NCBI RefSeq assembly: GCF_000400465.1
Contig: NW_008806287.1
Span: 300,001 to 332,000, forward strand
Source of the DNA: Wallemia ichthyophaga EXF-994
Taxonomy: Eukaryota; Fungi; Basidiomycota
Direction of reading: 5' to 3'
DNA: 32,000 bases
Part shown: one piece after another, positions 5,604 to 29,041 of the stretch
Layout of the letters: the number at the start of each line of letters is the position of its first letter
Position numbering within the stretch: the first letter of the stretch is position 1
Notes under the pieces: model-generated
Told to the model about the DNA's origin: nothing
Seen by the model: the letters and a program-made list of their open reading frames with translations, nothing else
Databases searched by the model: none
Translations under genes and position numbers: made by a program

Positions 5604-6335
5604 CTAAAGGATAGTACATCTTCGTCTACGTTGATTTCTTCTATAGGGCTGAGCAGGATGTTGATTAGTAGTACCATTGACACTTTGTCTCTGCCGCCTA
5701 ATCTCTCTGACGACGTGAAAGAAAGCTCTTTCAACATTAACGCAAGTTTTAGCAGAAGTTTCAATCATGGAGCATTGTAACTTCTTTGCCATGAGTTGAG
5801 CCTCTGATAGACTAACTTCACGCTCATAAACCTTGTCACACTTATTTCCAACAAGCATCAGTGGTATGTCATCACTCTCCTTAACACGAGTGATAAGATT
5901 ACGGAATTTATCGATTCTATCGAAAGTGGAACGTGAAGCAATTGAGTAGACGAGTAAGAAACCTTCGCCTTCTCTAATCCATTGATCGCGTAGAGCAGTA
6001 TACTCCTCTTGACCGGCTGTATCAAGAACTTCAAGTAAAGCAGGGCTATCATCTAAAACAACTTGCTTTCTGTAGCTGTCTTCGATGGTTGGATCGTAGG
6101 TTTCAACGAAGGAGTTCATGCAGAACTGGAACAAATTTAATTGGTGAATTAGAAAGTGCGCTTACTCACCTGTACAGTCAGCGCAGTTTTACCAACACCA
6201 CCATCACCCAATACACTAAGTTTACTGAGATGTGTTAGTAGTGGGCGGGCTCAAAACACTTCAACTAACTAAGGCGTGGCTTTTGACTGGTGTATTTGTT
6301 AATAGATGTAGATTACATTTAAACATACTAACCAT
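5604..6335 (-). CDS. RAS2: Ras small GTPase, fungal Ras2/RasB type
   Basis: Spliced model [43 protein letters not shown]...DTAGQEE...NKCD...ETSAK...CTIL (CAAX). Introns 6287-6332, 6225-6269 and 6126-6169; first exon is ATG only. Confidence 0.93.
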
Positions 6336-9617: not shown

Positions 9618-10053
9618 CACCCCAGCACGCTAAACAATCTTGTATGTATAACTAATGATGATTGATACCTCGAGAAATATGAAGTTTTCAACTTTTGGAT
9701 TGGTAAGACTGTAACTGATATTGAGGAGGAATGAATAGATAGAAATAGAAATAGAAATAAGGGATGATCATGTTACAAGGGAAGAAAATATTTTGCATCC
9801 CCTATAGCAAGACAAATCTGGGTTTTAGATATGTCGCACCCGCTCTGTTTGCACTCGTATGAGGTATTCCAAAAATCAGGAACGCACGTGAATTTTCAGC
9901 GGACAGTGCAGTCTGGAATTCTTCAGACCGAATTGCAGCTTTTTGATCAACCATCGTTTTCGAAGTAAAAGCAGGCTTTTAGCGAAGACATTCATCAAGT
10001 ACCGACAACCTACACACATACAGACAGACACGTATAAACACACTCATTTAGAA

Positions 10054-10944
10054 ATGCTATCAAAACTCGCACTCGCTTCTCTCGCCGCTTACGCTAGCGC
10101 ACACGGTATAGTGTCGCAGGTAATGGTCGGTGGCCAGTGGTACAACGGAGCCAATTACGGCTCAACAAATGACAACTCCCCTGTACGCGGATTCCCTTAC
10201 GACGGAGGGTATGTGCCATACTACAACGTGAACACAGATGACATCGTTTGCGGTGCGAATGGCCACGGTTCTGTACCAGTAACAGCAACTGTCAATGCCG
10301 GCGACGACGTGAAGCTCCGCTGGCACGGTGACCGTGGTCCAACTGGGGACTACTGGGGCCACTACGAGGGTTCTGTAATGGACTACCTGATGCGCTGCGA
10401 CGGTGATTGCAGCAACTTCCAGACAAGCTACGGCAATGCGCGCGTGTACAAGATCTGGGAAGCTGGTCTCGACACATCTCAGCCACGCCCTGACCAAGGT
10501 TTCTGGCCATCTCGTCCTCAAGGTGATGGTTTGTGGGCAATGGATGACATGTCTCGTAACTGGGGATCATGGCACACAGTAACCATCCCAGCCACAACCG
10601 CACCAGGCCAGTACATGCTGCGTCACGAGCTTCTCGCTCTCCAGGCCGCATCGAACCTTGCAGGCACAGCTGAGACTCCAATCGGTGGTCCACAATACTA
10701 CCCTGCTTGTGTCCAGCTCAATGTCGTCAACAATTCCGGCAACGTTGTCTACCCACCTGAAACTCCAGTCAGGGAAATCTACAGCACTGGTGACGCTCAG
10801 GTCAACATTTACACTCCTGCTCCTAACGGTATCGAACATTTCGATATCCCTGGTCCAAATGTTGTCAACACCTCCCCTTACAAGCGCTCCGCTCGTCGTG
10901 CTGATCGCCACGCACGTCGTGAGGCTTTCGGTAAGACTCACTAA
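10054..10944 (+). CDS. Secreted AA9 (GH61) lytic polysaccharide monooxygenase
   Basis: Signal peptide MLSKLALASLAAYASA then His1 (HGIV, codon 10102). Also CG...ATVNAG, IP...APGQYMLRHELLAL and QYYPACVQLNV motifs; intronless. Confidence 0.92.
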   Translation: MLSKLALASLAAYASAHGIVSQVMVGGQWYNGANYGSTNDNSPVRGFPYDGGYVPYYNVNTDDIVCGANGHGSVPVTATVNAGDDVKLRWHGDRGPTGDYWGHYEGSVMDYLMRCDGDCSNFQTSYGNARVYKIWEAGLDTSQPRPDQGFWPSRPQGDGLWAMDDMSRNWGSWHTVTIPATTAPGQYMLRHELLALQAASNLAGTAETPIGGPQYYPACVQLNVVNNSGNVVYPPETPVREIYSTGDAQVNIYTPAPNGIEHFDIPGPNVVNTSPYKRSARRADRHARREAFGKTH

Positions 10945-11217: not shown

Positions 11218-12516
11218 CTACGCGGACAGACGCTCCAACACCTCCTCGATGGCGTCAACAGCGCGTGTAAGGATAATTACCTGGTTTGTCAGCAGCGACT
11301 GCAGCATGACGAGCACACTCTCTCTAACAGTGTCTCTGTTAGCGAGGAGTGTCTTGAGGGTCTGCGACGTGCTCATAGCCTTATTCTCGAGCATGTGAAA
11401 GAGTGCAGCGTGGAGATCGAACTCGATGTCCTGGTTAGTAGAGGGGGAGTCATCGAGAGTTTGCAGGCTGCATGCGCCTTCGTCGCTGATGTTCTCATCA
11501 GCCAGTGAGCGCATCAAGAAGCGCAATCCCACTGGCATGTTCTGCGTAAGTGAGAGGTTGAATGTGCATAGTGAGCCGTCTTCAAGCAATAGATTCCACT
11601 TGCGTAAAAGGTCTTGCTTGCGCTGCGAGAAATCCATACCGGCACCGGCACCTACCTTGAATGGAACTATGTCGTACTCAAGGTTGTCAACAGCGAAGCC
11701 ATAAGCTAGAAGGAGCTCATTGGTTGCTTTGGCCCCGTAGTTGTTGAATACCTCGCTACCCTCTAAGGCACCGTGCGGCAGACTGATGGCTATTTTGGAA
11801 GTGCGTGTATAGATACTATCCTTCCACACCACTGCCGACATGGGCTTGTGGTTGCCTATGTCCCACAGAGGGACGAGCATCGGTGTGCTACTGCCACTCG
11901 TATTATCACTGCTACTCATGCTCGTGTCTGCATTTCTGCTCCCACTCCCGCTTATCAGTTTCGAGGGGAAGGAGCGTGAGGAGAGCATAGTGAGAGAGTG
12001 CTTGAAGACATCGTACGAAAATGACGCTAAACCATTAGATGCCAGCCAATCGGTAACGACGACGTAATCCCTTTGCCATTGCAACTCTCGCTCCCGCGTT
12101 GTGTTGTACAGACTCGTCGGCTGCGTGTACTCGAGCTCGGTGGGTGTCCAGTAGAGAGTCGTCAGCGTGCTTCCTATTGGCTGAAGCATAGCGACGTATG
12201 CGCGGTGCTTCAGTGCTCTTTGCAGCGAGTCGGGTTGGTTGTCGTAGTTGTAGTGCAGCGCTAGGTATACGACTACGAGGATATCCTCTCTTAGTGGCGT
12301 GTAGCTCAAGGCGTGGAACAGCTTCCTGCAGGAATCACGCGTTATGCACACACCCTCTGTCACACTGACTATCTCTGTCTCCTGCGCTATGTCTTTCTTC
12401 GCTATCCAACTGTAGCCAGATTGGGGAGAGTACGCAATGTCCATGTCGTCGTGTAGTTCACAGCCATTCTCCTTGAGCCAAGCTTTGAAGTTGTGGATGG
12501 TGGTAGTACGAGACAT
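11218..12516 (-). CDS. SET-domain protein lysine methyltransferase (SETD3/Rkm/Efm1-like class)
   Basis: FKAWLKENG N-terminus, SSRSFP, PLWDIGNHKP, EVFNNYG.K...LLLAYGF; intronless 432 aa. Confidence 0.88.
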   Translation of the reverse strand: MSRTTTIHNFKAWLKENGCELHDDMDIAYSPQSGYSWIAKKDIAQETEIVSVTEGVCITRDSCRKLFHALSYTPLREDILVVVYLALHYNYDNQPDSLQRALKHRAYVAMLQPIGSTLTTLYWTPTELEYTQPTSLYNTTRERELQWQRDYVVVTDWLASNGLASFSYDVFKHSLTMLSSRSFPSKLISGSGSRNADTSMSSSDNTSGSSTPMLVPLWDIGNHKPMSAVVWKDSIYTRTSKIAISLPHGALEGSEVFNNYGAKATNELLLAYGFAVDNLEYDIVPFKVGAGAGMDFSQRKQDLLRKWNLLLEDGSLCTFNLSLTQNMPVGLRFLMRSLADENISDEGACSLQTLDDSPSTNQDIEFDLHAALFHMLENKAMSTSQTLKTLLANRDTVRESVLVMLQSLLTNQVIILTRAVDAIEEVLERLSA

Positions 12517-12608: not shown

Positions 12609-13979
12609 TCACTTGGGATCCTCCACCCCCTTATACTCAAACACAGTCCTTCTCAACCTCTTGAAAGCTTCCTCGGCATCTTCTATCGACGCCATCGAGT
12701 AGCTCAGCCGTGTGTATGGGGTGACACGCGGAGTTGGGTAGAAGACCACACCTGGGAGGGCAATTACACCGTTGTTGATTGCCCTCTCTTTGATCACTTC
12801 GTTGCTGTCGTCGCAATCCAGTTTAAGCCACAGGAACATTCCGGCAGTTGGGGTCACCCAGCTAGCGATATCGCTCATATGTTTAGCAGCTGCGCCCTCG
12901 AAAGCGTCGCGCTTGACTCTATAGAAGTCTGCAACTCGCGCCACATGGTTGAGCAGTCCGTCTATTCCCCAGTGCGCAAATAATGCCTGTACTATAGCCT
13001 GTGATGTGGAATTTGGTTGAAGATTTGCAGCTGAAGTGTGCAGATCCATCGCTTTAATTATCTCCTGTGGTCCTGTTGCCCAGCCAATTCTGATCCCCGA
13101 TGAAAGAACCTTGCTCATCGAATCGAGTCGCAGAACTCTGCCGCGCTCCCCGCCGAGTTGCTTCTCCAGTGCAAAGTAAGAAGGCACCCTCTCACCGTCG
13201 AAAGTGAGGAAATAGTATGGATCGTCTTCAAGAATAAGGAAATCGTGTTTGCGTGCTAGGTTGAGTATATCTACTTTCCTTTGTTTACCGGCAGAAGCAC
13301 CAGATGGGTTGTTACCAGTGGGGACAGTGTAGACGAGTTTTGGGCGTGGTTTGTCTTGTGGCCAGTTGTCCATGACTTGCGCTAGTTTCTCAGCGGACAT
13401 GCCCTGCTCATCGCACTCAATCTCAACAAACTGAGCACCAGCGATGGTCATTTCTGGGATGGCGCCCGTGTATACAGGTGACTCAATAAGAACGTAGTCA
13501 CCTTGCTCAATTAGTGCAGCACATGCCTTTGTGAAAGCGTCTTGGGAACCGTTTGTGATTGTGATTGCGAAATCATCCTCACCTGCCTCACAACGACGGC
13601 CGTGAACGTGGTTTTGGAGGTCAGAAACGAATTTGTGAAGTCTTGGTAGACCACATGTAGCAGTGTACTGTAATGCCTCCGCGAGATCTGGACCTGCATT
13701 GATTTCAAGTTTCGGGTGGGGAGCTCCCGGGGAAACAGGCTTAAGGGAGACTGTGATGTTTTCAAAGGGGAATGTTTCTGGGCTGAATAGGTAAGAATAT
13801 TGCGTATAAACCACGCATTCAACTCACTTTGGTTTACCAGCCAGCAAAGAAATCATACCAGGCTTATTCTCAAGCGGGAAAAGGGCTCTGATAGCTGATG
13901 GGTGTCTTGATTTAGCTTGGGCAGTGAGCCAATTATCGTAATGCGTTGAATCCAGCTGAGAAGAAGGTTGACAAGTCAT
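12609..13979 (-). CDS. PLP-dependent aromatic amino acid / 2-aminoadipate aminotransferase (Aro8/AADAT-like)
   Basis: SLLAGKPNPETFPF restored across intron 13783-13827; TNGSQDA, NNPSG, EDDPYY, DSMSKVLSSGIRIG (PLP lysine), GMFLW. Confidence 0.92.
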
Positions 13980-15603: not shown

Positions 15604-17050
15604 ATGAGTCGCCCAGAAAACGTTGGAATTAAGGGAATAGAGATTTATTTCCCAAAGAGAGTTAGTTGAGGTGGTTCTGGTACTTCTCTCAGCTCACACA
15701 CCGCACAGTGCATCTCAGAAACTGATTTAGAGCAATTTGACGGCGTTTCTGCTGGAAAGTACACTATCGGATTCGGACAGCAATACATGGCTTGCTGCGA
15801 TGACAGAGAAGATATCAACTCTTTCGCCTTGTCCGCCGTCGATGGCCTTCTCAAGAAGTACAACGTCGATCCAAAATCTATTGGCAGATTGGAAGTTGGC
15901 ACTGAAACTGTCATCGATAAATCCAAATCTACAAAGACTGTCTTAATGGACTTGTTCAAGGATTCTGGCAACACTGACATTGAGGGTCAGTCAAACGTTT
16001 GCTTTCTTTACCATTTCTCATTTACCTACAGGTGTTGACACTAAGAATGCTTGTTACGGCGGTACCTCAGCCCTCTTTAACGCTGTCAATTGGGTTGAAT
16101 CTTCTAGCTGGGACGGCAGAGACGCTATCGTCGTAGCCGGTGACATTGCCATTTACGCTGAAGGTTCTGCTAGACCTGTCGGTGGTGCAGGCTGCGTTGC
16201 CATGCTCATTGGTCCAAACGCACCAATCGTTCTTGAGCCTACTCACGGTACATACATGACAAACGCATGGGACTTCTACAAGCCAGACCTCAACTCTGAA
16301 TACCCAGAAGTAGATGGCCCACTCACTATTGACTGCTACTTTGGATCTCTCGACAACTCGTACGACTCGTACCGCGAGAAATACTCCAAGCGCACCCAAA
16401 CCAACAAGCAAGACGTTAAGGGTGACAACTTTGACTTCATGGTCTTCCACTCTCCATACGGCAAACTTGTCCAAAAGGGTCATGCCAGACTCACCTACAA
16501 CGACTTTGTATCCAACCCCTCCCTGCCAAAGTTTGAGGGTATCGATCAAGCTATCGCTTCAGTACCAAAAGCAAAGACGTACTTTGACAAGGCAATCGAA
16601 AAGACATTCATGACTGCCGCTAAGGATGCCTACAGCAAGCAAGTTGAGCCTTCTTCAACTACCTGCAAGCGTCTCGGTAACATGTACACTGGTTCTCTCT
16701 ACGGTGGTCTCGCATCTCTCCTCTCCAACGTCAACTCGGATGACTTGCAAGGAAAGAGAGCGGGTATGTACTCTTACGGATCTGGATGTGCTGCATCCTT
16801 CTTTGCTGTCAAATTCGTCGGATCTACAAAGCAAATTGCTGATGCGGTCGATTTACACAAGCGTCTCGACTCGATGAAGGTTGTTCCTGTGACTGAATAC
16901 GTTTCTTCCCTCAAAACTCGTGAGGAGAATCACAACGCAAAGTCTTATGCTCCTAAAGGTCAAATTGAAAACATATGGGGTGGTGCTTACTACCTCGACA
17001 ACATTGACGAAAAATTCCGTCGTCACTACAAACAAGCTCCACTCGCATAG
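15604..17050 (+). CDS. ERG13: Hydroxymethylglutaryl-CoA synthase
   Basis: MSRPENVGIKGIEIYFP, LEVGTETVIDKSKS, DTKNACYGGT (catalytic Cys), FHSPYGKLVQK, GNMYTGSLY. Introns 15661-15708 and 15986-16031. Confidence 0.97.
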
Positions 17051-17254: not shown

Positions 17255-19489
17255 TCACATACTTTCAAACAACAAATTAGCCGCCATTTCCGTATTTTTC
17301 TCACAAGCAAGATAGCATTGCTTGGCTTGTTCAAAGTCAAATCCACCAAATGAACAGAGCTGTGTGATGTTAGTTTTACTCCATTTACTCGCTAACCTTC
17401 ACTCACATTCTCAATTGCCTCTCTGTCTGAAGGTGAGACGTCGACTTCTCTTTGTTCTTGCTCTCTTTGCTCTCTTTCCTGTCTAGCCGTCTGTTCAGAA
17501 GCTGCAAGAACGTCATGAGGAATATCTTCAGCCTCATTTAAACTTTGTGCATTCGCAGCTGTAACGTGTTAAATGGGAATCAACCATATAACTTAACTCC
17601 CACCTTGTGTACTAGCCTGCTCACGAGCAATGGCCATAAGATTCAGCCAGCTGCTGCTCTTCAACAATTTCTCCAAATCTCTTTCATCCCTATTGATACC
17701 AACCTTCAATGCCAATCTAGATTCATCCGCACTGAACATTCCAGATGGCTCCAAGAAAGCAATCAGATGCCAATCATTGAGTATATCACAAAGCGCCTCC
17801 TTCTTTTCATTAGTGACACTTTCAAGGTCAACATCATCCGAATTATGGAAACCCAATCCAGTACTCTCAGAAACAACTGGCAAGAAAGTCGAGATAAGCT
17901 TGCTGACAGACTGATCCTGGAAACCTTGTCTGTTTTCTATTGGAAATACGCTGCTCTTAAACACCGGGTTGGACTGGTTAGGGAAACCGTGTGTGAGATT
18001 AACAAGCAGATATTCCACAGGGAAGCACGGTTTAGCGTTCTTTTTAACATCTATTCCGTACTCATTTTTGTAGCGGTAAAACACATCGGGAATGTACTTT
18101 CCCGGTTTAGACTCTTTCATACGCAGCGTTGATGGCTCGACGGATGGTTCGACGATATCTGCATCGATGAGTGCCATTCCTTGATCAGAGATTTGGAATG
18201 CAGATATATCAATACCGCCATTCTGCGTGCCACTGAGCACGCAAGTGATAAATCTTGAGTTGAATCTACCACTCTTGGATTGTGTTGTTTGTAACTTGTG
18301 TTGATTCTGTAAGTGTCCCGCGAAACACAACTCCAATGAAGATAAAAAGAAACTGTCTTTGTGGCGCTTGAATAGTGGTGACTGAGTGCCCGGTGGTTGG
18401 GAGAGATCGGAGTATATCATACCGAGTACCTCTAATCCAGCATTCTGCGCCAATTCAACGACCCTCTCTTGATCTTCCCATGGTAAGCCGAGAGTCATAC
18501 CGTCGACTTCACCTTCTTGTGGGATCTCATGCACCGCTTCGACGACGGCCTTAATACCCATAGGCACAGCTTCATATGGTGCATATCTACCGAGCAGAAT
18601 ACCAAATCTCTGCAAACCAGAAGCGCGCCAGAAGTTCAGCAATCCTTCAACCAAACCAGGAGAGGAAAATTCGACATGATCGAGCATTCTGTATTCCTGG
18701 ACTTGGAGAGTGATAGCGTTAGGAACCCACTGCTTAAATTTAAAGTCCAATTCTTCTAAAGGTGGTAGCTGCGCGACAGAGGAGGTTGGTGGATTACTAT
18801 CTTTGAGTTTACGAAGGTATGCGTGAAATGATAAGTGCTTTATGTTCTGCTGAGCTTGGTATTCTTTGTCGTAAGGCTGAGGAAAAGTGAGAGTGATAAA
18901 TGGAATACAATCAACGCACCTCGATTGGAAGTGTGTTTAGATTACCTTCCCTCGAAGAAGACGACGTCTGGCGAGGTATCTTACCAGACTGCCTAAACCA
19001 ATGCGCGTCGATTGGATGGTCTTTTACGAGTTGCCACGGTCTAGCGGGAAGGCTAGAAGTAGTACCAGAAGCAGTGCTAGAGGATTGCGCTGGCTCTGGC
19101 ACTTTTGCAGAGGAGGCGAAAAGAAGATCACCGTGCCTAGGAAGAGTGCTAATCAGCTAAATTCCTTGTAAATCCTATCAATCCACGCACTTTATACCCA
19201 AATCGGATAACTTCCTCTTTGAGAGTGACGACAGCTGAGTCTCACCACCCCTAGGCTCATTTGAGAGCGATAGCGTGTGCTTATCGAGTGTAGGTGCACT
19301 CTCTATAATCTACACTTTCCGTCAACGCGAATCCACGCCACCTGCGCTGCTACCCACTCTATCTCCCAGCAATTCGATCGAATCATCTCCACTCAAATCG
19401 AATCTGAATGTTCCTTCAGCTGAGCGTATTCTGACAATCTAAATGACGCCATTAGCGTGTCTATGTGTACTAGCACTCCCACCAACCAT
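17255..19489 (-). CDS. NPL4: Cdc48 cofactor Npl4 with atypical architecture (no zf-Npl4 zinc fingers; C-terminal UBA)
   Basis: UBL MIVRIRSAEGTFRF...LGIKHGDLLF; KHLSFHAYLRK; AITLQ..EYRMLDHVEF; QRFGILLGRY; GMIYSDL; FLSSLE; SRFITCV; FPVEYLLVNLTHGFP; FPIENR. Six GT-AG introns; first exon is ATG only. Confidence 0.93.
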
Positions 19490-19545: not shown

Positions 19546-21128
19546 TCACATTATCATACAGTTGACATCTTCTATCCCATTCTCCTCCATGTGCTCCTTC
19601 TGGGCTTCTTTGTCGTTCGCTTTCGCTTTCGCGCGGACTTCCTTTGGAAAATACAGCTCCATGAAACCAACGAGGGCTTGATCGAGATTATCTGAATGAC
19701 TGTCTGAGTAAGTGCTTATCTGACGATCGCCGACTCACTTCTATTCGCTGACATCACTACAGGTGCCCTACACAATGGGCAATCTGACTGGCCGCGCTTT
19801 TGCATCTTGACGAGGCATCTAACGCAGAATATATGAGTGCAGCTACATAATTTGTTAGCTTGTTTCAAACATGAATACACCTAACTCACTTTAACCTAAT
19901 TGGCTTTGTTTGTTTTGTTAGCAGCACCCTACCACAACCAATGCACCCACCTTAAACGCAATCTCTTGGCATATTAAACAATTGTAATCGTCTATAGACG
20001 GGATTATTGGTATCAATGTCTCCGTCAGCCTCGCAAGAAGTACTCTAGGCAAGCTGATAGTGTAGAATGTCCAACCGAAGTTAGAGTTCTTGGAACTAGT
20101 TGCAGACTGCAACGCGCTCCCTTCGACACCAGCGAAAGAGTAGAAAGAATCCGTAGGCAGTGCTGTCATTTTCATGTGTTTCTTGAGTATTTTCCGCGCT
20201 GCTTCAAGATTCGCAGTATAGAACTTTTTAATCTCGAGCAAAGCCATATTCAGTTCCAAGAACTGATCAAGAGCCTGCCGTGATCGCTTTGACTTCATAG
20301 TCCGACTATCACCTAGTCCACGCTTGACGACCTCAGCAGCGAATGCATTCAGACGTATCTCCGCACTCTCTACATCCCTTTCACCCCGACTAGACTCAGT
20401 TATACCTTCATATATTGCAGATTCCACCCAGAGCGTGAAAATCTCCCGCCACGCGTATAAATCATTCGTCTTCTTCTTGTGCAAACCGAATGTCGAATGA
20501 TTTACCGCACTCGGTCCTGTTACACCTGTTATGGCATTACATAGCGTCTCTACCTGCGTGGCGAACTTCTTCTTTTCAACCATTTGCAGCGCCTCGAGCT
20601 TATCGAATGCAGCTGTGAGTGCGCCCAAGAACTTTGCATCCGCGTTGAGGGGTATGTGAATTTCTTTGTTGGATGGATCTGTGCCATCTGTGAATATTTC
20701 TTCCATATTGTCCTGATGCTGCTTATCAAGGTCCTTGTTTGAGGTACTTGACGTACTCGCGGTGACGGCATCTAAACCGGAAGAGCCCTTCTGAAGGTTG
20801 TAGAGACTCAACCACTCCTCCCTGCTATCATTATCATTGAACTGTACAATAAGTCGAGGCTGTGGCTGATTCAATGGCCCGTCAAGGACATATTCGATGT
20901 GGGTATCTTCCGTTTTCCTCAAAAGCAAATCGAGCAACTTCGATTTATTCAATCCGATCATGTTAAGCTCCTCGACGACATCCGTTAGAAGCTTTTTAAG
21001 GTGCTTATACTCGATGCTGTTCTCCTGCCACTCTGTGGGGAAAGTTAGTGCGATGTGGCACGTGAAGTATAACACACACCCTCTGGGAATTCTTCATTTA
21101 GCTGCTCAAATTGTTTCCCGTATTTCAT
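19546..21128 (-). CDS. SPX-RING (C3HC4) E3 ubiquitin ligase, Pqr1/Spx1-like, ending in CAAX
   Basis: MKYGKQF...PEEWQENSIEYKHLKK (SPX). The RING CLIC..KPIRLNCTHIFCVRC...CPLC is assembled through a 14-nt microexon (19890-19903). Ends NCMIM*. Confidence 0.88.
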
Positions 21129-21337: not shown

Positions 21338-23582
21338 CTACAACTCAATCCTATTATACTTGGCATCATGATTGTGCAATTTGCTCTGATTGATCTTTAT
21401 CCTCTTCTCATCCGCCTTAACAAAGACTTCAACCGACCACTCAAACCACACCTTCTTGTTATCAGTAAGACGCCAGAGATGTACATCCACCTCGCTATTC
21501 GTTGGTAGATATACGCCCGTGTTTATTGGAAAATATATTGGGAACCAACTTAACATTTCCTTATCATAACGCTCTGGATGTGTCGATAGCCACACATTCC
21601 CGTACAAATGTGCTTCAAAGTATCCTGCTAATCCATGCAGAACACCAGCATAAGGAATAGTGAATGTCAGATGGGCTGCTCTTGTGTTATGATAGTTTGT
21701 CATCGGATTCCCATTTCGATCCATCACAAACTCATACTTGGATGGGTGCTTATACGACCAACATTGCTGAACTGCCTTACGATTGCTTTCTTTATCCATT
21801 CCGCTGAGTATATTTACAGCCTGGAACATGACCACGTAAGGCATTTCAGCATTCTTAGCATCTCCCATGTGCATCACCTCATTATACAGCTTGGTTGACG
21901 ATAGTGGGGCTATGTATGACGTGTAGTAGGATGGTATTGACACTCCATATGGCTTCAAAAGCCTCATAGCACCATCTAAACATTCGGGAGAGAGTTCATT
22001 ATCACCAAAGCTACCAAGTAGCTCAGAGATGAGTATATCATTCTTCTGCTCGTCTTCCAGTTCTATAATACGCATATCGCCAAAAACCAACTCTACACTC
22101 GCGATTTTGCTCTCATTCCATTCATCCATTCTACCTTGCAATGTTACACAAGCATTTGGGTTTTTCTCTACGGCCATTATGTGTATCCTTCTACCTTCAG
22201 CTGCAGCTTCTACTGCGTTAATTGCTCCTTGCACTAATGGCCCTCGACCAGCACCAACGACTGCTATCCTTGTCAGTGAATTTGGTTCTTTATCGAGCAG
22301 TGCTAGGTATGTTGCTTGTTCGTATTTTTGATACTTGATAGGATCTTTTTCGAATATTTCATATGTCGAGCTATCCAAGTTGTCAAGAAGAGGCTGCAGC
22401 GGTGCTTGTAACCAATCCATATATCCACTTGCAAACTGCTCGACAGAAGTTGCACTGTCGTTTGAAAGCTTCTCCATGTAGCGTAGGTATTGCACATATG
22501 CTTTGCTGCCACCGGACTTGTGAATACCTTCGTAAGTCTCAGTGAGTACAATTGTCGGAAGTGTCTGTTTGTTGGAATGAGTTGAGTTAATAGAAATGAC
22601 AAAGAAAAAAATACCCACTTTGATCTGCTCCTTGATAAACTCCTGACAAGACTTGGAGAGAACAGGATATCCTTTTGCGTTCCCTACAAAGGCATTTGCT
22701 GGTATAATAATCTGCCGAGTTGGTTCACTCGACCATCTCTTGAGTGCACAGGGCGGTGGCAGAGGCTGGCCAAGATCCAACGCCAGGCCAAGCCTAGGCG
22801 AGTAGTCACAGAGTGTACGTATAGCATCCCAGACTTCCCACGTCGATGAAGGATCGCCCTTGAACTCAGATAACGCCGGGGATACGCCGGATTGCTCAAG
22901 TTCAGCAGGATCAGACACAGGTATCATGACAGAAAGCTGCAAATACGACGTGCTATCTAATGCTGCCATAACAGACCGAGCATAGTCTGCGACATGTTTC
23001 CGATTCTTCGGTGCTGGTAATATGAGCGTGTGTATACTAAGATAAGAAGCGTACGCGACTTCCTGCTTCAGAGCCATCTCCGAATCAAACCTGATTCCCT
23101 CATCTGGAGAATCGAGCTCAAGCCAATCTGACGCAAAGGCAATTATCGACTCGCATTCGTCTGTGCGCGTGAGTGATTAGAGTAATGGAATAAGCGTATT
23201 TAACGCACCAAGCTTAGAAACATTTACTTCATTCTTATCGTAAACCCTTGTTAGCCTCCAGACTTCTGCCTCCTTGGCTGTCTGTCGATCTTGTACAACG
23301 TTCTCTGTCGTCAAGGCCAATAAGAGCAGGCAATCAACAAAATCAAAACGCACCAGACTTTCCAGCTATATAGCTCGCCCTAGCTCTGCCCTTATTGACA
23401 TCGTTTTCGTTTGAAACACAGTAGCGCTGCCAACGAGTTTTCCAGGTGGGTTTGGTGAACGGGAGAGTGATTGCGTCGTAATCAAGATCGAATGCATCAT
23501 TCACGTGATCCAAAATTGTCGGATTGCTATCGAGCAAGTCCTGATCGATGTGGTTCGCTATCGGCACACGATTCCCGGTCAT
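21338..23582 (-). CDS. PRMT5: Protein arginine N-methyltransferase 5 (Skb1/Hsl7)
   Basis: DWLELDSPDEGIRFDSE, LQAPLQPLLDNLDSSTYEIFEKDPIKY, VGAGRGPLV, SELLGSFGDNELSPECLDG, SWFPIYFP. Three introns; the start at MTGNRVP is the least certain part. Confidence 0.93.
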
Positions 23583-23661: not shown

Positions 23662-25587
23662 TTACAACTCAAACCCTTCCGTACTCAACTTCTCCTCAAA
23701 TGTCAACACCTCAAACACCAACCTACGCCATATCTTGATAGCAGCCGTCTTTGAGTCTTCAAGCATCACGGGCTCAAGCGTCTCCACAAATTCATCTATA
23801 CCTTGCTTTGATTTGAGCTGATCGCTCACAATTTCCATCATTTCTTCATCAGCTTCTCCGAAATACTCCTGCATCAGTGACTTTGTAATGGGTATGAGTC
23901 TCTTTGAGATAATTGCATCTGTTATAGCATCCCAATTCACATCAAATCTGGATAACGATGTGTAATCTTCTGGGACATCGTTAGCAATTTCTCTCAATCG
24001 CACTCTTCTCGCAGCCTCTCTCTGCTCCGGCGTGAGATCATCTTTGTCTGGAACAATACCGCTGTAGTCGAGTTTGACAAGTTTGCGCTTTTGTATTGTC
24101 TCGCCGTTTTCATCAACCTCCTCATCGTTGAATGCTGTGGTACGTGCTGCTTGCTTGGATGGCTCCGCCGTCTCAGTATATTGGGTGGGCTGAGCGGCTG
24201 CTGACAATCTAATCGGCATACCGTCATCCATCAAAACACCTCTCTTCTTCTGCTCTTTAGTGAAGTTCTCCATATCTCTAGCTTGTTGCTCTAAGAAAAC
24301 TTCAGTGTCTCTCTTAACCTTTTCAGATTCGTTTACTTCCGCCACTTTATCTGCTTCATCTGCGGTCTCTTCTTTCCGTCTAGCTTGTGAGCGTCCATTT
24401 CTCCATTTGCGTCTAAAGCATGTAAGTTAGGTGATGTAAAGAACGGCACACCCACCTGTTCACGTAGAACAGTTCATTCTTTTCAGCTAGTTTATCATCG
24501 TCAACTGCTAGTAGCTTATGTAATGCACTCTCCCTCGCGCTAGTGTCAGAGCTATCATTTGCCCTTTCTCTTGCAAGATCTCGATCATATTCATTTAGTC
24601 TTGCTCTCTCCTTCCCTTCAAACTTGCGTTCACGGTCTCTGAAAGCCAGTTCTCTATCTCTAGACCTCCTGGACAGACGATCTTTTTCTGATTTCTCATC
24701 TTGCTCGGCCATTGACAAGGCTTGCTCTAAGGTCATTGGCAAGTCTTCAGATCTGTCTTGTTGATGGCTAGAAGACGACCTTACGAAGCCGACAGGTTTA
24801 TTGAATGACTGTGGATCATTAACATTGGAGCCACTGATACCGCTTCGACTACCCCACTTTCTCATGTTAGATTTCTGATCGCGTTCTCTTTCTCTCTCAG
24901 CCTGATCTCTCTCCAAACGCTCTTTATCGCGCTGCTCTTTCTCCTGTCTCTGCACCTGCTTAGATTTGACAGCAGGGTTTACCATAGTGCCTGATCTGAA
25001 CATTTCGATCATGTTGAGTGTCTCCTGTCTATGAGCCTCAGGTATCTCCTCTGGAGGTAAATCACGAAGGTGGGCAGGTGTATCGTCTGCTATAGGAACT
25101 GCATTGTTCATATTAGGGCCTCTAGCGTATAGGTTTGGATCTGACATGTGATCCAGTATCTTTGCTATCACTTCCTCTGCTCTGTGCTCCTCCAATTCCT
25201 CATCGTCTGTTTTAAGCAGAGTCTTCTCGTAATCGTCTAGAAATGCTCTCGTTTTCTCGTCTGGCTTCACCAGCAGATTCTTGCGTGGTTGACCGCGTTC
25301 ACCAGCGGGGACTGACACGCCATTAAGCGTTTTGATTGCTCGGAGTACACTATCTGGCTCGGCAAACGTCGCGAATCCAAAAGCCTGTGGTTTGCCTGTT
25401 GGGCCTCTAACACGATTGAGAGTAACGAGATTTCCGGCGGCCTTTGATATTTGATTAGAGGGAATTATAATTGAGGTGGTACTCGATATGGTACACTCAC
25501 ATTCAGTAATCTATCCAGCCACTCATCACTTACGCCTGCACTGATACTACCCACAAATACTGTGAGCTTCTCGCTACCTGGGACCAT
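23662..25587 (-). CDS. RRM + charged region + PWI splicing factor (RBM25/Snu71-like)
   Basis: RRM LTVFVGSISAGVSDEW...PQAFGFATF, an R/E/D-rich middle, and PWI-like C-terminus EYFGEADEEM...LEPVMLEDSKTAAIKIWRRLVFE. Introns 25442-25500 and 24413-24455. Confidence 0.87.
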
Positions 25588-25662: not shown

Positions 25663-26777
<1,115 letters not shown>

Positions 26778-27096: not shown

Positions 27097-29041
27097 CTAC
27101 CTCTTATCATCTTCACTGCTATCCGAGTTATTCTCCCTCCTCCCTGCACCTCTATGCCTGAGATTGTTGTTTGCACTCTCCGCCTCCCTGTCACTCAAGC
27201 TTGGTCTCAGCATTTGTTCGTTTCCAGCAACAACAGCAGGATCCAGTGGCTTTGGTTTTTCAAATACCGAAAACTCAGCGCCAGTTATCTTGGAGCGTAT
27301 GTACATGTACAATACCCTAACTCCAAATGCAGCAATTGTCCAGAGAATTGAGCCCACTGGCGCTGCAATAAACGTACCTAAAGCCTCGAAACTGTTGTAC
27401 GATGGATAGAGACCTTCGTTGATAATGAGCAAAGCACCTGCAGATGAAGCATCTCCATTGTAATAAACCAAGCCGAATAAGAATACGGTGAGAATGCCTG
27501 GTGGTGGTGGTGGTGGTGAGCAGAAGCCGAGATTTTGCATAATAACTTACCTCCCAGTCCACCTATTATCACATCAAACCCATTCAGAAAGTATAATCTG
27601 TCCGTAAATCCAAGTAACATTGCCGGCATAATAGCAGCGGACACCAGATCAGCAATGAGATAAAGAATGAGGACATCATTTACTTTGTTGGATGCTACTG
27701 GTCCAATTACAGCTGCATTTCTAAAAAGAACGTCAGATTAATCAGCACTTCTTAGTAAGAACCTACACAATCAAAATCAATCTTGTCCACCAAACGTTAA
27801 TCTTGTTTCTGAATATGTCATTTGAAACTGTTGCAACTAAAGCTGTTTGGAGCGTATCATACGCTGCACATGAGAGAGCAACAGACAAGACCATCATCAA
27901 CCCATTTATCCACGCTGGACAAAACCTGTTGACGAGAAGGAAGAGTACTGTTGAGCTGCTATCTTCGTTTACGTTGTTGGGACCTGGATATACGTTTGAC
28001 CAAGAAGCAATCAAACCAGCTTTAAGTGGTGTTGATTTTGGTGTTAAATGGGTGGTGGGTATTAGAGAAGGTAAATCACTCACAAAATCCAACAAGGAAG
28101 GTCAAGCAAAAGATGAGACAAGCTGCGAGGATACAGCCGATTGTCAAATCTTTCTGAGATTTGGCGGCGTAACAACGCTGCCAGTAGCTGGACAAGAAGT
28201 AGTCTTGGATGTGATGTTAGTAGAGAGTGTGGTGTCTTTGTGATTTTGCACTCACTGTTGAACACAACAGCGACTGGGAGAACTTAAACTTGAATTAACT
28301 TTGATTAGGAGGATAAGCTAACAACCCACTGTACAACAGTTGCCAACCGAGCTGACTATCCTTCAACAGATCTGATCTTTGGTGAATCAAATCGGTGTCA
28401 ATTTCTACATTCACGGCGACTGCAATTGTGCAAACAACAACGAGAATAATGAAGAAAGAAGCCTGAATGGTATCAGTTACGAGGGATACCTTGAAACCAC
28501 CCCAAGCGGTGTACATCATGGTGACCAGCATTTCCACGACGATGGGCATAATCAGCCAAACGTTTTGAGTTTCTGAAGACCATCCAGTGAGTGACTGAAT
28601 GACAGAGTGAATGGAAGTCATTTCAGAGAGCATAAAAACGTATAATGTGATAATAGTGAATGTAGATAAGAAAAGACCAGCTGGAACACCGAATCTAGCC
28701 CTAATGAACTCTGTCAAGATAAAACCCTCCGGACATTTCTTTCGAAGTTGAGAAGCGAGTGGTGGGAAAGTGAGCAGTGGTAGACTGGCAGCCAAAGAGT
28801 ACGTTATCAGTGGCTGTAGACCGTAAGTTGCAATTTCTGGGTAAGTGAGTTGTAGGCCAGCGCCCAAACCTTGAGCAGCAAAGTTGCACATAATAACGCC
28901 GCTATTGGCAGTCTTTGCGGCTGCCAGGAAATCTGTTTTGGTCTTGGTAACGAAGAAGCTGATCACCAAACCGATAATGAGGAAAACACCCAAGGTGACG
29001 TAGATGATAGCCATTGAGGCATCGTCAGAGGGATATGCCAT
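27097..29041 (-). CDS. Sodium:solute symporter family transporter (urea/polyamine Dur3/Dur31-like)
   Basis: Multi-TM protein with CPEGFILTEFIRARFG, YTAWGGFKVSLVTDTIQ and SSYWQRCYAAK; five GT-AG introns including an 18-nt microexon. Substrate not determinable from sequence. Confidence 0.83.

Follow-up and report, generated by a model that had tools for sequence, protein, structure and literature searches.

The window analysed here, a 32,000-nucleotide stretch of the Wallemia ichthyophaga EXF-994 genome, carries a gene for Npl4, an adaptor of Cdc48-Ufd1, in which the ligands of both zinc fingers are missing. The two zinc fingers of Npl4 have been described as resting its tower on the D1 ring of Cdc48, and the locus raises the question of whether an Npl4 can lose its zinc sites and still function, and if so what stands in their place. 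The complete coding region (17255..19489; this and all other features given below lie on the minus strand) comprises seven exons and encodes 649 amino acids according to manual splicing and translation. Judged from the sequence, it is likely that this is the functional, and probably the only, Npl4 ortholog of a Wallemia species of the W. ichthyophaga/hederae group (Wallemiomycetes), from which all three ancestral basidiomycete zinc modules have been eliminated and which still works as a Cdc48-Ufd1 adaptor.

Zinc modules of the Wallemia protein

The protein matches the Pfam families UN_NPL4, zf-NPL4, NPL4 and UBA. Its UBX-like domain, the module that binds the Cdc48 N domain, occupies residues 1-74 (19118..19489, spanning introns 1-3), scores 34.4 bits with the UN_NPL4 profile (cut-off 21.9) and is modelled by AF2 with a pLDDT of 94-98. 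The zf-NPL4-homologous region (residues 105-227; 18616..19027) retains the scaffold with zero Cys/His ligands, and its PF05020 score of 105.9 bits (cut-off 25) compares with 213-223 bits, roughly twice as much, for the canonical proteins of Ustilago maydis and the Microbotryomycetes. The MPN-like and C-terminal domains (CTD; residues 230-557; 17626..18609), which form the ubiquitin-binding and unfolding 'tower', score 340.8 bits with PF05021. The AF2 model has an overall pLDDT of 86 and matches the yeast and Chaetomium Npl4 structures 6cdd, 6jwh and 8dar with target-normalised TM scores of 0.83-0.85 (Foldseek), and the Npl4 fold is thus predicted to be otherwise canonical.

The ligands were followed in an alignment of 121 sequences, 118 of which are the closest non-Wallemia basidiomycete homologs; 45 columns are invariant across all 121, the window protein included. 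All eight ligands are present in each of the 118 homologs (CHCC or CCCC in ZF1, CHCC in ZF2), whereas the window protein has none of them. The ZF1 relic, GKIPRQTSSSSREGNLNTLPIE|PYD (residues 119-143; 18868..18985, split by intron 4), is defined by these alignments; of the four ligands of the pattern C-x-H/C ... C-x2-C, present in 118/118 homologs, it retains none, the C-x-H-G knuckle now reading S-R-E-G and five residues including the third ligand ('GMCDY' in U. maydis) being deleted. The equivalent of ZF2 (C ... H ... C-x2-C, four of four ligands in 118/118 homologs and none here) is a deletion junction, LDFKFK|QWVPNAITLQ (LDFKFKQWVPNAITLQ; residues 183-198; 18703..18750), which lies inside exon 5 and is uninterrupted by an intron. 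Here, 17 residues with three ligands are gone ('KPCPSASHLSWPAGICT') and the fourth Cys has become Trp190. These 5- and 17-residue gaps are the only two core deletions relative to more than 70% of the homologs, and HMMER alignments to the Chaetomium (6chs/6cdd) and yeast (6oa9) proteins likewise place gaps exactly at both zinc knuckles.

The third zinc module of basidiomycete Npl4 is a C-terminal NZF, which is found in 116 of the 118 homologs by the criterion of a C-terminal CxxC-x(8-12)-CxxC with a T-F motif and is absent from the tail of the window protein; in U. maydis Npl4 it scores weakly with PF00641 (20.8 bits, under the cut-off of 27). In the window protein an acidic, charged linker (residues 558-608; 17428..17625, containing intron 5 at 17603-17559) instead leads into a predicted UBA domain resembling Rad23 UBA2 (residues 609-645; 17270..17427, containing intron 6 at 17406-17360). 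The tail alone passes the PF00627 cut-off (25.7 versus 22.4 bits), while in the context of the full-length protein the score is marginal at 21.2 bits. Its top PDB match is yeast Rad23 UBA2 (2qsf, E=9e-8), in which 'VDVSPSDREAIENLCSFGGFDFEQAKQCYLACEKNTEMAANLLFE' aligns to 'VDYTPEDDQAISRLCELGFERDLVIQVYFACDKNEEAAANILFS', and AF2 predicts three helices at residues 607-648; the homolog search returned no candidate sharing three 5-mers with this tail. Although the domain is sequence-like to Rad23 UBA2, it is fused to Npl4 here, whereas in yeast it is part of a UBL-UBA shuttle factor. The UBA occupies the NZF position of other basidiomycete Npl4 proteins, and the NZF has been replaced by a zinc-free domain.

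These results bear out what an earlier note had read from the sequence, namely that ZF1 and ZF2 have lost every Cys/His ligand and that ZF2 is cleanly deleted; the yeast Npl4 strings it quoted are also those of the 6oa9_G alignment. The premise of the zinc-independent Cdc48-Ufd1-Npl4 mechanism that the note further proposed, an intact gene for an Npl4 protein lacking the ZF1 and ZF2 ligands, stands; genes for Cdc48 and Ufd1 lie outside the window. The loss of the NZF extends the claim to three modules, and the NZF-to-UBA exchange makes 'zinc-free Npl4' a stronger description than the one originally given.

Proposed docking on Cdc48 and possible causes of the loss

The Npl4 proteins of Saccharomyces cerevisiae (6oa9/6jwh) and Chaetomium thermophilum (6chs/6cdd) share the UBX-like domain, zf-NPL4 scaffold, MPN-like domain and CTD with the window protein (HMMER, E=1e-113 to 1e-103). 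They differ in that the window ZF1 is ligand-free and 4-5 residues shorter and that ZF2 is a gap at the same place; yeast Npl4 moreover has no C-terminal ubiquitin-binding module, whereas the window protein carries the UBA. The NZF-type proteins of basidiomycetes and metazoans (U. maydis P0007; human NPLOC4, 7wwp) have the same domain order and likewise a further ubiquitin-binding module behind the CTD, which in the window protein is a predicted zinc-free three-helix UBA rather than a RanBP2-type NZF, and ZF1 and ZF2 are missing. A published precedent for ZnF-independent docking is plant NPL4: Arabidopsis AtNPL4 (9m3z), described in 2025, works with CDC48 although the whole ZnF domain is absent, and it has an altered UFD1-binding surface and a contact through F105 of the UBXL-MPN linker (PMC12902296). 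The Wallemia protein, in contrast, is fungal-type throughout and retains a 123-residue zf-NPL4 scaffold (106 bits), and its model matches Arabidopsis NPL4 (9m3z_G) only weakly (TMq 0.36, 16% identity). The plant and Wallemia finger losses are independent.

The earlier note left room for the loss being widespread or already described, which is so in part. Besides the plant case, zf-NPL4 domains without ligands occur in the tunicate Styela clava (XP_039256624), in the cryptophytes Baffinella frigidus (KAJ1495322) and Chroomonas CCMP1168 and in some other eukaryotes, and ZF2-less zf-NPL4 proteins occur in Sanchytrium tribonematis and Oscarella pearsei. In all of these the scaffold is kept and one or both fingers lack their Cys/His residues, but the lineages are unrelated and the replacement sequences different. 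Finger loss is thus not unique to Wallemia, while the literature yielded no description of a ligand-free, otherwise canonical fungal Npl4, nor of the Styela, cryptophyte, Sanchytrium and Oscarella cases.

ZF1 and ZF2 contact the D1 ring as well as the N domain by backbone hydrogen bonds and are associated with Cu2+ sensitivity (PMC7785736; reviewed in PMC9941556); in human p97 the fingers touch D1 mostly through backbone hydrogen bonds to a beta-strand (PMC7785736). Since this contact is made by backbone hydrogen bonds, zinc is in principle not needed for it. It is proposed that ZF1 decayed in place, leaving a loop (SREGNLNTLPIEPYD) that is shorter and ligand-free yet highly conserved, that ZF2 was excised by an in-frame deletion of 17 residues in which the last Cys became Trp, and that the C-terminal ubiquitin-binding NZF gave way to a Rad23-type UBA. 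The protein would retain its function as the ubiquitin adaptor of Cdc48-Ufd1, docking through the UBX-like domain on a Cdc48 N domain and through the SHP motif of Ufd1, with the conserved ZF1-derived loop perhaps providing a third contact. Polyubiquitin would be held by the MPN groove and the CTD as in yeast, and the UBA, for which ubiquitin binding is predicted, may take over the recruitment role of the NZF. With ZF2 gone, the resting or 'seesaw' arrangement on two fingers that has been described for the yeast and human complexes could not be reproduced as such.

Why the zinc sites were lost may have a neutral explanation, which is a serious candidate even if it falls a little short of being probable. 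Contacts between the fingers and D1 would have become dispensable, for example because binding through the UBXL domain and Ufd1-SHP suffices or because Cdc48 changed first, and the zinc sites would then have eroded in a small, fast-evolving genome, the UBA being an unrelated gain. This explanation concerns only why the sites disappeared, and not what the protein now is. Plants cope without ZnF domains by means of the linker contact (PMC12902296), losses are scattered independently among other eukaryotes, and the SPX-RING protein encoded by the neighbouring gene keeps its Cys/His residues, which means that zinc sites are not avoided genome-wide. However, that a single protein has lost three out of three zinc modules and carries a zinc-free analogue in place of one looks directional, and the strong constraint on the present ZF1 relic shows that it is not a decaying spacer. 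That the loss of the three sites was instead adaptive, and that the Wallemia Cdc48-Ufd1-Npl4 complex has a different docking geometry with one zinc-free ZF1-derived contact or none and no two-finger resting or seesaw state, seems unlikely. If true, the unfoldase would be intrinsically insensitive to agents whose target in canonical Npl4 is the zinc fingers (Cu2+, CuET/disulfiram metabolites, thiol oxidants) or to a shortage of zinc at low water activity, and it would represent a natural minimal design that reveals the Npl4-D1 contacts an opisthokont-type complex truly needs.

A constrained and otherwise canonical fungal Npl4 without zinc sites amounts to a natural experiment on which opisthokont-type contacts are dispensable. 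The Wallemia protein offers a ready zinc-free scaffold for biochemical comparison of metal content, resistance to Cu2+ and CuET, and unfolding kinetics, and the NZF-to-UBA exchange would be a natural demonstration that ubiquitin-binding modules are interchangeable at that position. At the present stage the finding is evolutionary and descriptive; the Wallemia sequences are already public, and ZnF-less NPL4 is already known in plants.

Orthology, selection and copy number in Wallemia

A ZF-less, UBA-tailed Npl4 is found in four Wallemia lineages, namely the window, L001, W. hederae and the AT-rich lineage L002, whose protein, P0002, is 65% identical to the window protein (BLASTP). The nearest named protein is that of W. 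hederae (P0121; TIA87032.1; 85.5% identical), which was annotated independently and has the same architecture. The 'SREGNLNTLPIEPYDKEY' of the ZF1 relic is unchanged in W. hederae and L002, in the latter despite the 65% overall identity, and differs in L001 by one substitution, N to D. The ZF2 junction is likewise found in P0001/L001 (DYKYKQWVPTAITLQ), W. hederae and P0002/L002 (NYTFKQWVPAAITLQ). Relative to L001, at a dS of about 1, dN/dS is 0.073 over the whole gene, 0.041 in the ZF region, 0.055 in the MPN and CTD, 0.06 in the ZF1 relic, 0.05 at the ZF2 junction and 0.008 in the UBA, and every part including the ZF relics is under strong purifying selection. Because dN/dS values lie at 0.04-0.07 and the W. 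hederae model is the same, the gene is neither a pseudogene nor a mis-model.

Genus-wide microsynteny (PRMT5, SPX-RING, Npl4, HMG-CoA synthase) is conserved. The neighbouring SPX-RING gene retains its RING Cys/His residues. Neighbours shared with the NPL4 loci of Naganishia or Ustilago were not found, and synteny is uninformative at that depth.

A reading in which this gene would be a sub-functionalised, diverged paralog, with the standard function left to a canonical zinc-finger Npl4 at another locus, is improbable. In its favour, the divergence of the window protein from other basidiomycete Npl4 proteins exceeds that among those proteins by about 5 percentage points, and the ligand-free Npl4-like proteins of Styela or Oscarella could themselves be paralogs, such that proteins of this kind may exist. 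In its core, the window protein shares 46-51% identity with the other basidiomycete subphyla, compared with 50-58% among these, which suggests only a mild acceleration of the sort expected of an ortholog on a deep branch. The truncated Pfam count table of W. ichthyophaga (2013 supplement, sorted by count) lists neither PF05021 nor PF05020 among the families with at least two proteins; it would thus allow the species no more than a single protein of the NPL4 family, and a canonical paralog becomes less probable. Among the 120 best matches there is no canonical Npl4 named as Wallemia, and the range from 65% down to 48% identity is empty. Purifying selection acts with uniform strength, on the UBXL, MPN and CTD as well, and the gene keeps its neighbours within the genus.

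Sequences intermediate between Wallemia and canonical basidiomycetes were not found in the representative search, nor was an intermediate lineage among five JGI metagenome loci, of which L003, L004 and L006 have both fingers, L007 begins at the last ZF2 Cys and L005 lies outside the finger region.

Relic loops, introns and gene model

In theory, Asp, Glu, Ser or distant Cys/His residues could serve the ZF-derived region as non-canonical metal ligands, a reading that is very improbable. The relic does contain Glu, Asp and Ser, and Cys and His residues are present elsewhere in the protein, but neither Cys nor His is found in residues 119-143 (the ZF1 relic, GKIPRQ...PYD) or 183-198 (the ZF2 junction), and the ZF2 loop is physically absent. 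Both stretches are modelled by AF2 as coil, the ZF1 relic mostly so and with a pLDDT of 73-76.

The ZF1 relic is interrupted by intron 4 (18877..18919), a 43-nt intron with the sequence GTGCGT...CAG, and the frame is restored only by splicing: read through in the frame of exon 4 it begins GTG CGT TGA, with a stop as the third codon. L001 (48 nt) and L002 have an intron at the corresponding position, but the sequences are unrelated, and identity to L001 is 55-72% in introns versus 82% in the coding sequence. With a position shared by the relatives, a sequence that is not conserved and a stop on read-through, intron 4 is genuine. One of its frames reads C-V-D-C, but this frame has no possible junction with exon 4, and L001 lacks the motif in its homologous intron. 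Alternative splicing at ZF1 (donor GTAATC; introns of 26 or 69 nt) breaks the frame and was ruled out. An assembly or frameshift error, a pseudogene, or finger exons hidden or removed by a wrong gene model, to which the interruption of the ZF1 relic and the C-V-D-C frame could have pointed, is refuted for practical purposes by the ZF2 deletion within an uninterrupted exon, the identical state in four independently sequenced lineages, the low dN/dS and the nature of the intron itself.

The seven exons lie at 19489-19487, 19438-19358, 19309-19191, 19136-18920, 18876-17604, 17558-17407 and 17359-17255, the last including the stop. Introns 1-6 (48, 48, 54, 43, 45 and 47 nt) all have GT..AG borders, their splice sites having been deduced from reading frames, homology and one database annotation, and the exon structure is the same in L001. 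Spliced in this way, the gene yields exactly the peptides of the earlier note, which was also right that the small intron near ZF1 hides no Cys/His exon; the end of the open reading frame was misplaced, as the apparent stop at 17593 falls inside intron 5 and is followed by two further exons encoding the linker and the UBA. A 567-residue model ending at that stop was rejected, given that the downstream frame matches the tail of P0002. A homologous linker is present in L001, W. hederae and L002, and in L002 it is continuous with the core open reading frame. Intron 3 lengths of 34 or 42 nt were also discarded, as it is the 54-nt version that aligns 'GIKHGDLLF' with the homologs.

Loss of the zinc ligands from Npl4

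Npl4, the ubiquitin adaptor of the Cdc48/p97 unfoldase, is encoded on the minus strand (19489 to 17255), where six-frame translation and splice-site inspection delimit a gene of seven exons and 649 amino acids. Its introns measure 43-54 nt each and follow GT..AG throughout. A 48-nt intron apparently lies directly behind the start codon (window 19487-19489; 9406-9408 in L001, the locus of a relative) as ATG|GT...AG|ATT GTC, and its removal yields the N-terminus MIVRIRS, which matches homologs; the W. hederae database model has a different N-terminus, MPNHAAQIVRIRS. Pfam assigns residues 1-74 to UN_NPL4, 105-227 to zf-NPL4 (105.9 bits), 230-557 to NPL4 (340.8 bits) and 609-645 to UBA. Chaetomium and yeast Npl4 are the nearest solved structures (E=1e-113 to 1e-103), and the AlphaFold2 model (mean pLDDT 86, from the 121-sequence alignment) resembles them with a TM of ~0.84, normalised to target.

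When the protein is aligned with its 120 best database homologs, all eight ligands of the two zf-NPL4 zinc fingers, ZF1 (CHCC or CCCC) and ZF2 (CHCC), are retained in each of the 118 non-Wallemia sequences, whereas the window Npl4 retains none. The ZF1 counterpart, GKIPRQTSSSSREGNLNTLPIE|PYD (18985-18868, minus), is split by a 43-nt intron (18919-18877) and still contains recognisable relics, with C-R-H-G changed to S-R-E-G and C-M-P-L-E-P-Y-D to T-L-P-I-E-P-Y-D. The ZF2 counterpart, LDFKFK|QWVPNAITLQ (18750-18703, minus), is contained in a single exon and has Trp190 in place of the final ZF2 Cys. When set against over 70% of the homologs, the core carries only two deletions, 5 residues in ZF1 and 17 covering ZF2. 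The earlier note had claimed the loss of both fingers, and its two peptides prove exact; the clean removal of ZF2 that it described corresponds to the 17 residues missing inside one exon, and the comparison with basidiomycete Npl4s that it proposed finds the ligands complete in 118/118 proteins. It was also right that the small ZF1 intron conceals no Cys/His exon. Such an exon is ruled out by the intron length and by a stop at the third codon on read-through, and in relatives the intron is conserved in position and not in sequence. The CxxC-like R-C-V-D-C-I-P in one frame of this intron (18877-18919, minus) is a chance product of the GTGCGT donor. Its C-V-D-C does not continue the frame of exon 4 and is missing from the homologous L001 intron.

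A UBA tail in place of the NZF

The stop of the long ORF at 17593 sits within an intron and is not the end of Npl4. Past this point two more exons encode a charged linker and the C-terminal domain LCSFGGFDFEQAKQCYLACEKNTEMAANLLFESM. The tail region (17255-17625, minus) thus contains two further introns, and its last part is a UBA of the Rad23 UBA2 type. In L002, the locus of a second relative, core and linker lie in one uninterrupted ORF, which identifies the tail as part of the Npl4 gene. Taken on its own, the tail scores 25.7 bits against Pfam UBA, over the cut-off, its best solved-structure match is yeast Rad23 UBA2 (E=9e-8), and three helices are predicted in the AlphaFold2 model. A C-terminal NZF-like zinc finger, CPHCTFxN...CxxCGLPL, is found in 116 of the 118 basidiomycete homologs (P0003-P0120 of alignment A1), the other two being apparently truncated or mis-modelled entries; the NZF has been described as specific to metazoan Npl4 (2023 review, PMC9941556). 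As the UBA stands where these homologs have the NZF, and the ZF1 and ZF2 ligands are missing, none of the three zinc modules is left and the ubiquitin-binding one, the NZF, has given way to a zinc-free analogue, which extends the original observation on the fingers. Judged by its sequence, the window Npl4 is zinc-ligand-free, constrained, otherwise canonical and UBA-tailed.

Distribution in Wallemia, constraint and orthology

The GC content of the window (45%), its tiny introns and its gene density are all in keeping with Wallemia, and its layout is compact and fungal. Clustered with the best match at 90% identity is W. hederae TIA87032.1 / A0A4T0FFE8 ('Nuclear protein localization protein 4'), whose annotated sequence is likewise ZF-less in this region and carries the UBA tail. 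Pairwise Npl4 identities of 85-88% among the window, L001 (a Logan assembly) and W. hederae indicate that these are three separate species within the W. ichthyophaga/hederae group. L001 is syntenic with the window (PRMT5, SPX-RING, Npl4, HMG-CoA synthase), the common order being SSF, PCNA, PRMT5, SPX, Npl4, HMG-CoA synthase. These neighbours are the SSF transporter (28295-29041, minus), PCNA (25809-26558, minus), PRMT5 (21338-23077, minus) and HMG-CoA synthase (15980-17050, plus); the window further encodes a Lipase_3 (66-2687, plus), a P450 (3455-4594, minus), a Ras-family GTPase (5604-6134, minus), an AA9 LPMO (9943-10944, plus) and an aminotransferase (12609-13814, minus), and the ORFs 11218-12516, 23662-24345 and 24413-25318 have no Pfam match. 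A fourth, AT-rich lineage (P0002 from L002; ENA and Logan assemblies), with an Npl4 65% identical by BLASTP and 62% in the MAFFT alignment, possesses all features of the zinc-free protein including an identical 'SREGNLNTLPIEPYDKEY'.

Between the window and L001, dN/dS (Nei-Gojobori) is 0.073 for the whole gene (dS ~1.0, dN 0.074), 0.041 for the zf-NPL4 region, 0.06 for the ZF1 relic, 0.05 for the ZF2 junction, 0.055 for MPN + CTD and 0.008 for the UBA, and identity is 55-72% in the introns and 82% in the CDS. All 45 alignment columns that are invariant across the 121 sequences are retained. Core identity is 46-51% between the window and other basidiomycete subphyla versus 50-58% among those subphyla, which points to a mildly accelerated deep ortholog and not to a runaway paralog. 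That a canonical zinc-finger paralog exists elsewhere in the genome is unlikely on indirect evidence: none from Wallemia is among the matches listed in the database homolog search, and PF05021 and PF05020 are both missing from the part of the count-sorted Pfam table of W. ichthyophaga (PMC3849046 supplement) that covers every family with at least two proteins, so that by this part of the table at most one NPL4-family protein is annotated. The same table lists a single protein for UFD1 and a single one for CDC48_N.

Possible function and parallels in other eukaryotes

In the yeast and human complexes both Npl4 fingers sit on the D1 ring and contact the N domains; their alternation in human p97, a 'seesaw', is required for unfolding, and Cu2+ from a disulfiram metabolite inactivates them (PMC7785736; review PMC9941556). 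The Wallemia Npl4 would still be part of the Cdc48-Ufd1-Npl4 unfoldase, docking via its UBX-like domain and Ufd1, and the conserved loop derived from ZF1 may keep a backbone-mediated D1 contact. As the ZF2 contacts would be missing, the two-finger geometry would necessarily differ, and chain recruitment, the role of the NZF, may have been taken over by the UBA. The zinc sites could have been lost by neutral erosion once their contacts became dispensable, or under selection for robustness to metal or oxidant. Zinc is not generally avoided in this genome, since the gene adjoining Npl4 (19716-21075, minus) encodes an SPX-domain protein that ends in a RING finger with intact Cys/His ligands.

No paper among those searched combines Npl4, zinc finger and Wallemia, and the published precedent for a ZnF-less NPL4 comes from plants (PMC12902296), where the whole ZnF domain is missing and the UFD1 interface is altered, whereas Wallemia keeps the fungal-type scaffold. 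A HMMER search with the window ZF region, run exhaustively over 1.84 billion representatives, gave 461 matches, from which no frequency of loss is derivable because the query biased the search towards ZF-less sequences. Among the best 150 of these 461, both fingers are ligand-free in Styela clava (XP_039256624) and two relatives and in the cryptophytes Baffinella and Chroomonas, ZF2 only is lacking in Sanchytrium tribonematis and Oscarella pearsei, and several metagenomic proteins have also lost ligands (the proteins with losses elsewhere being P0202, P0205, P0278, P0191, P0261, P0181, P0211, P0174 and P0215). Loss of the ligands is thus rare yet recurrent, and independent elsewhere. Of the reading in the earlier note, a zinc-free Npl4 is supported, and a zinc-independent mechanism in this lineage would be a possible consequence; the loss is not unique among eukaryotes, as plants, Styela and cryptophytes demonstrate. 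For work on p97/Cdc48 the Wallemia protein amounts to a clean natural experiment, so far at the level of sequence. In the same search, 17 separate stretches of the 4261-residue P0163, probably a repetitive or low-complexity protein, match residues 50-109 of the query (24% identity, E=3e-27).
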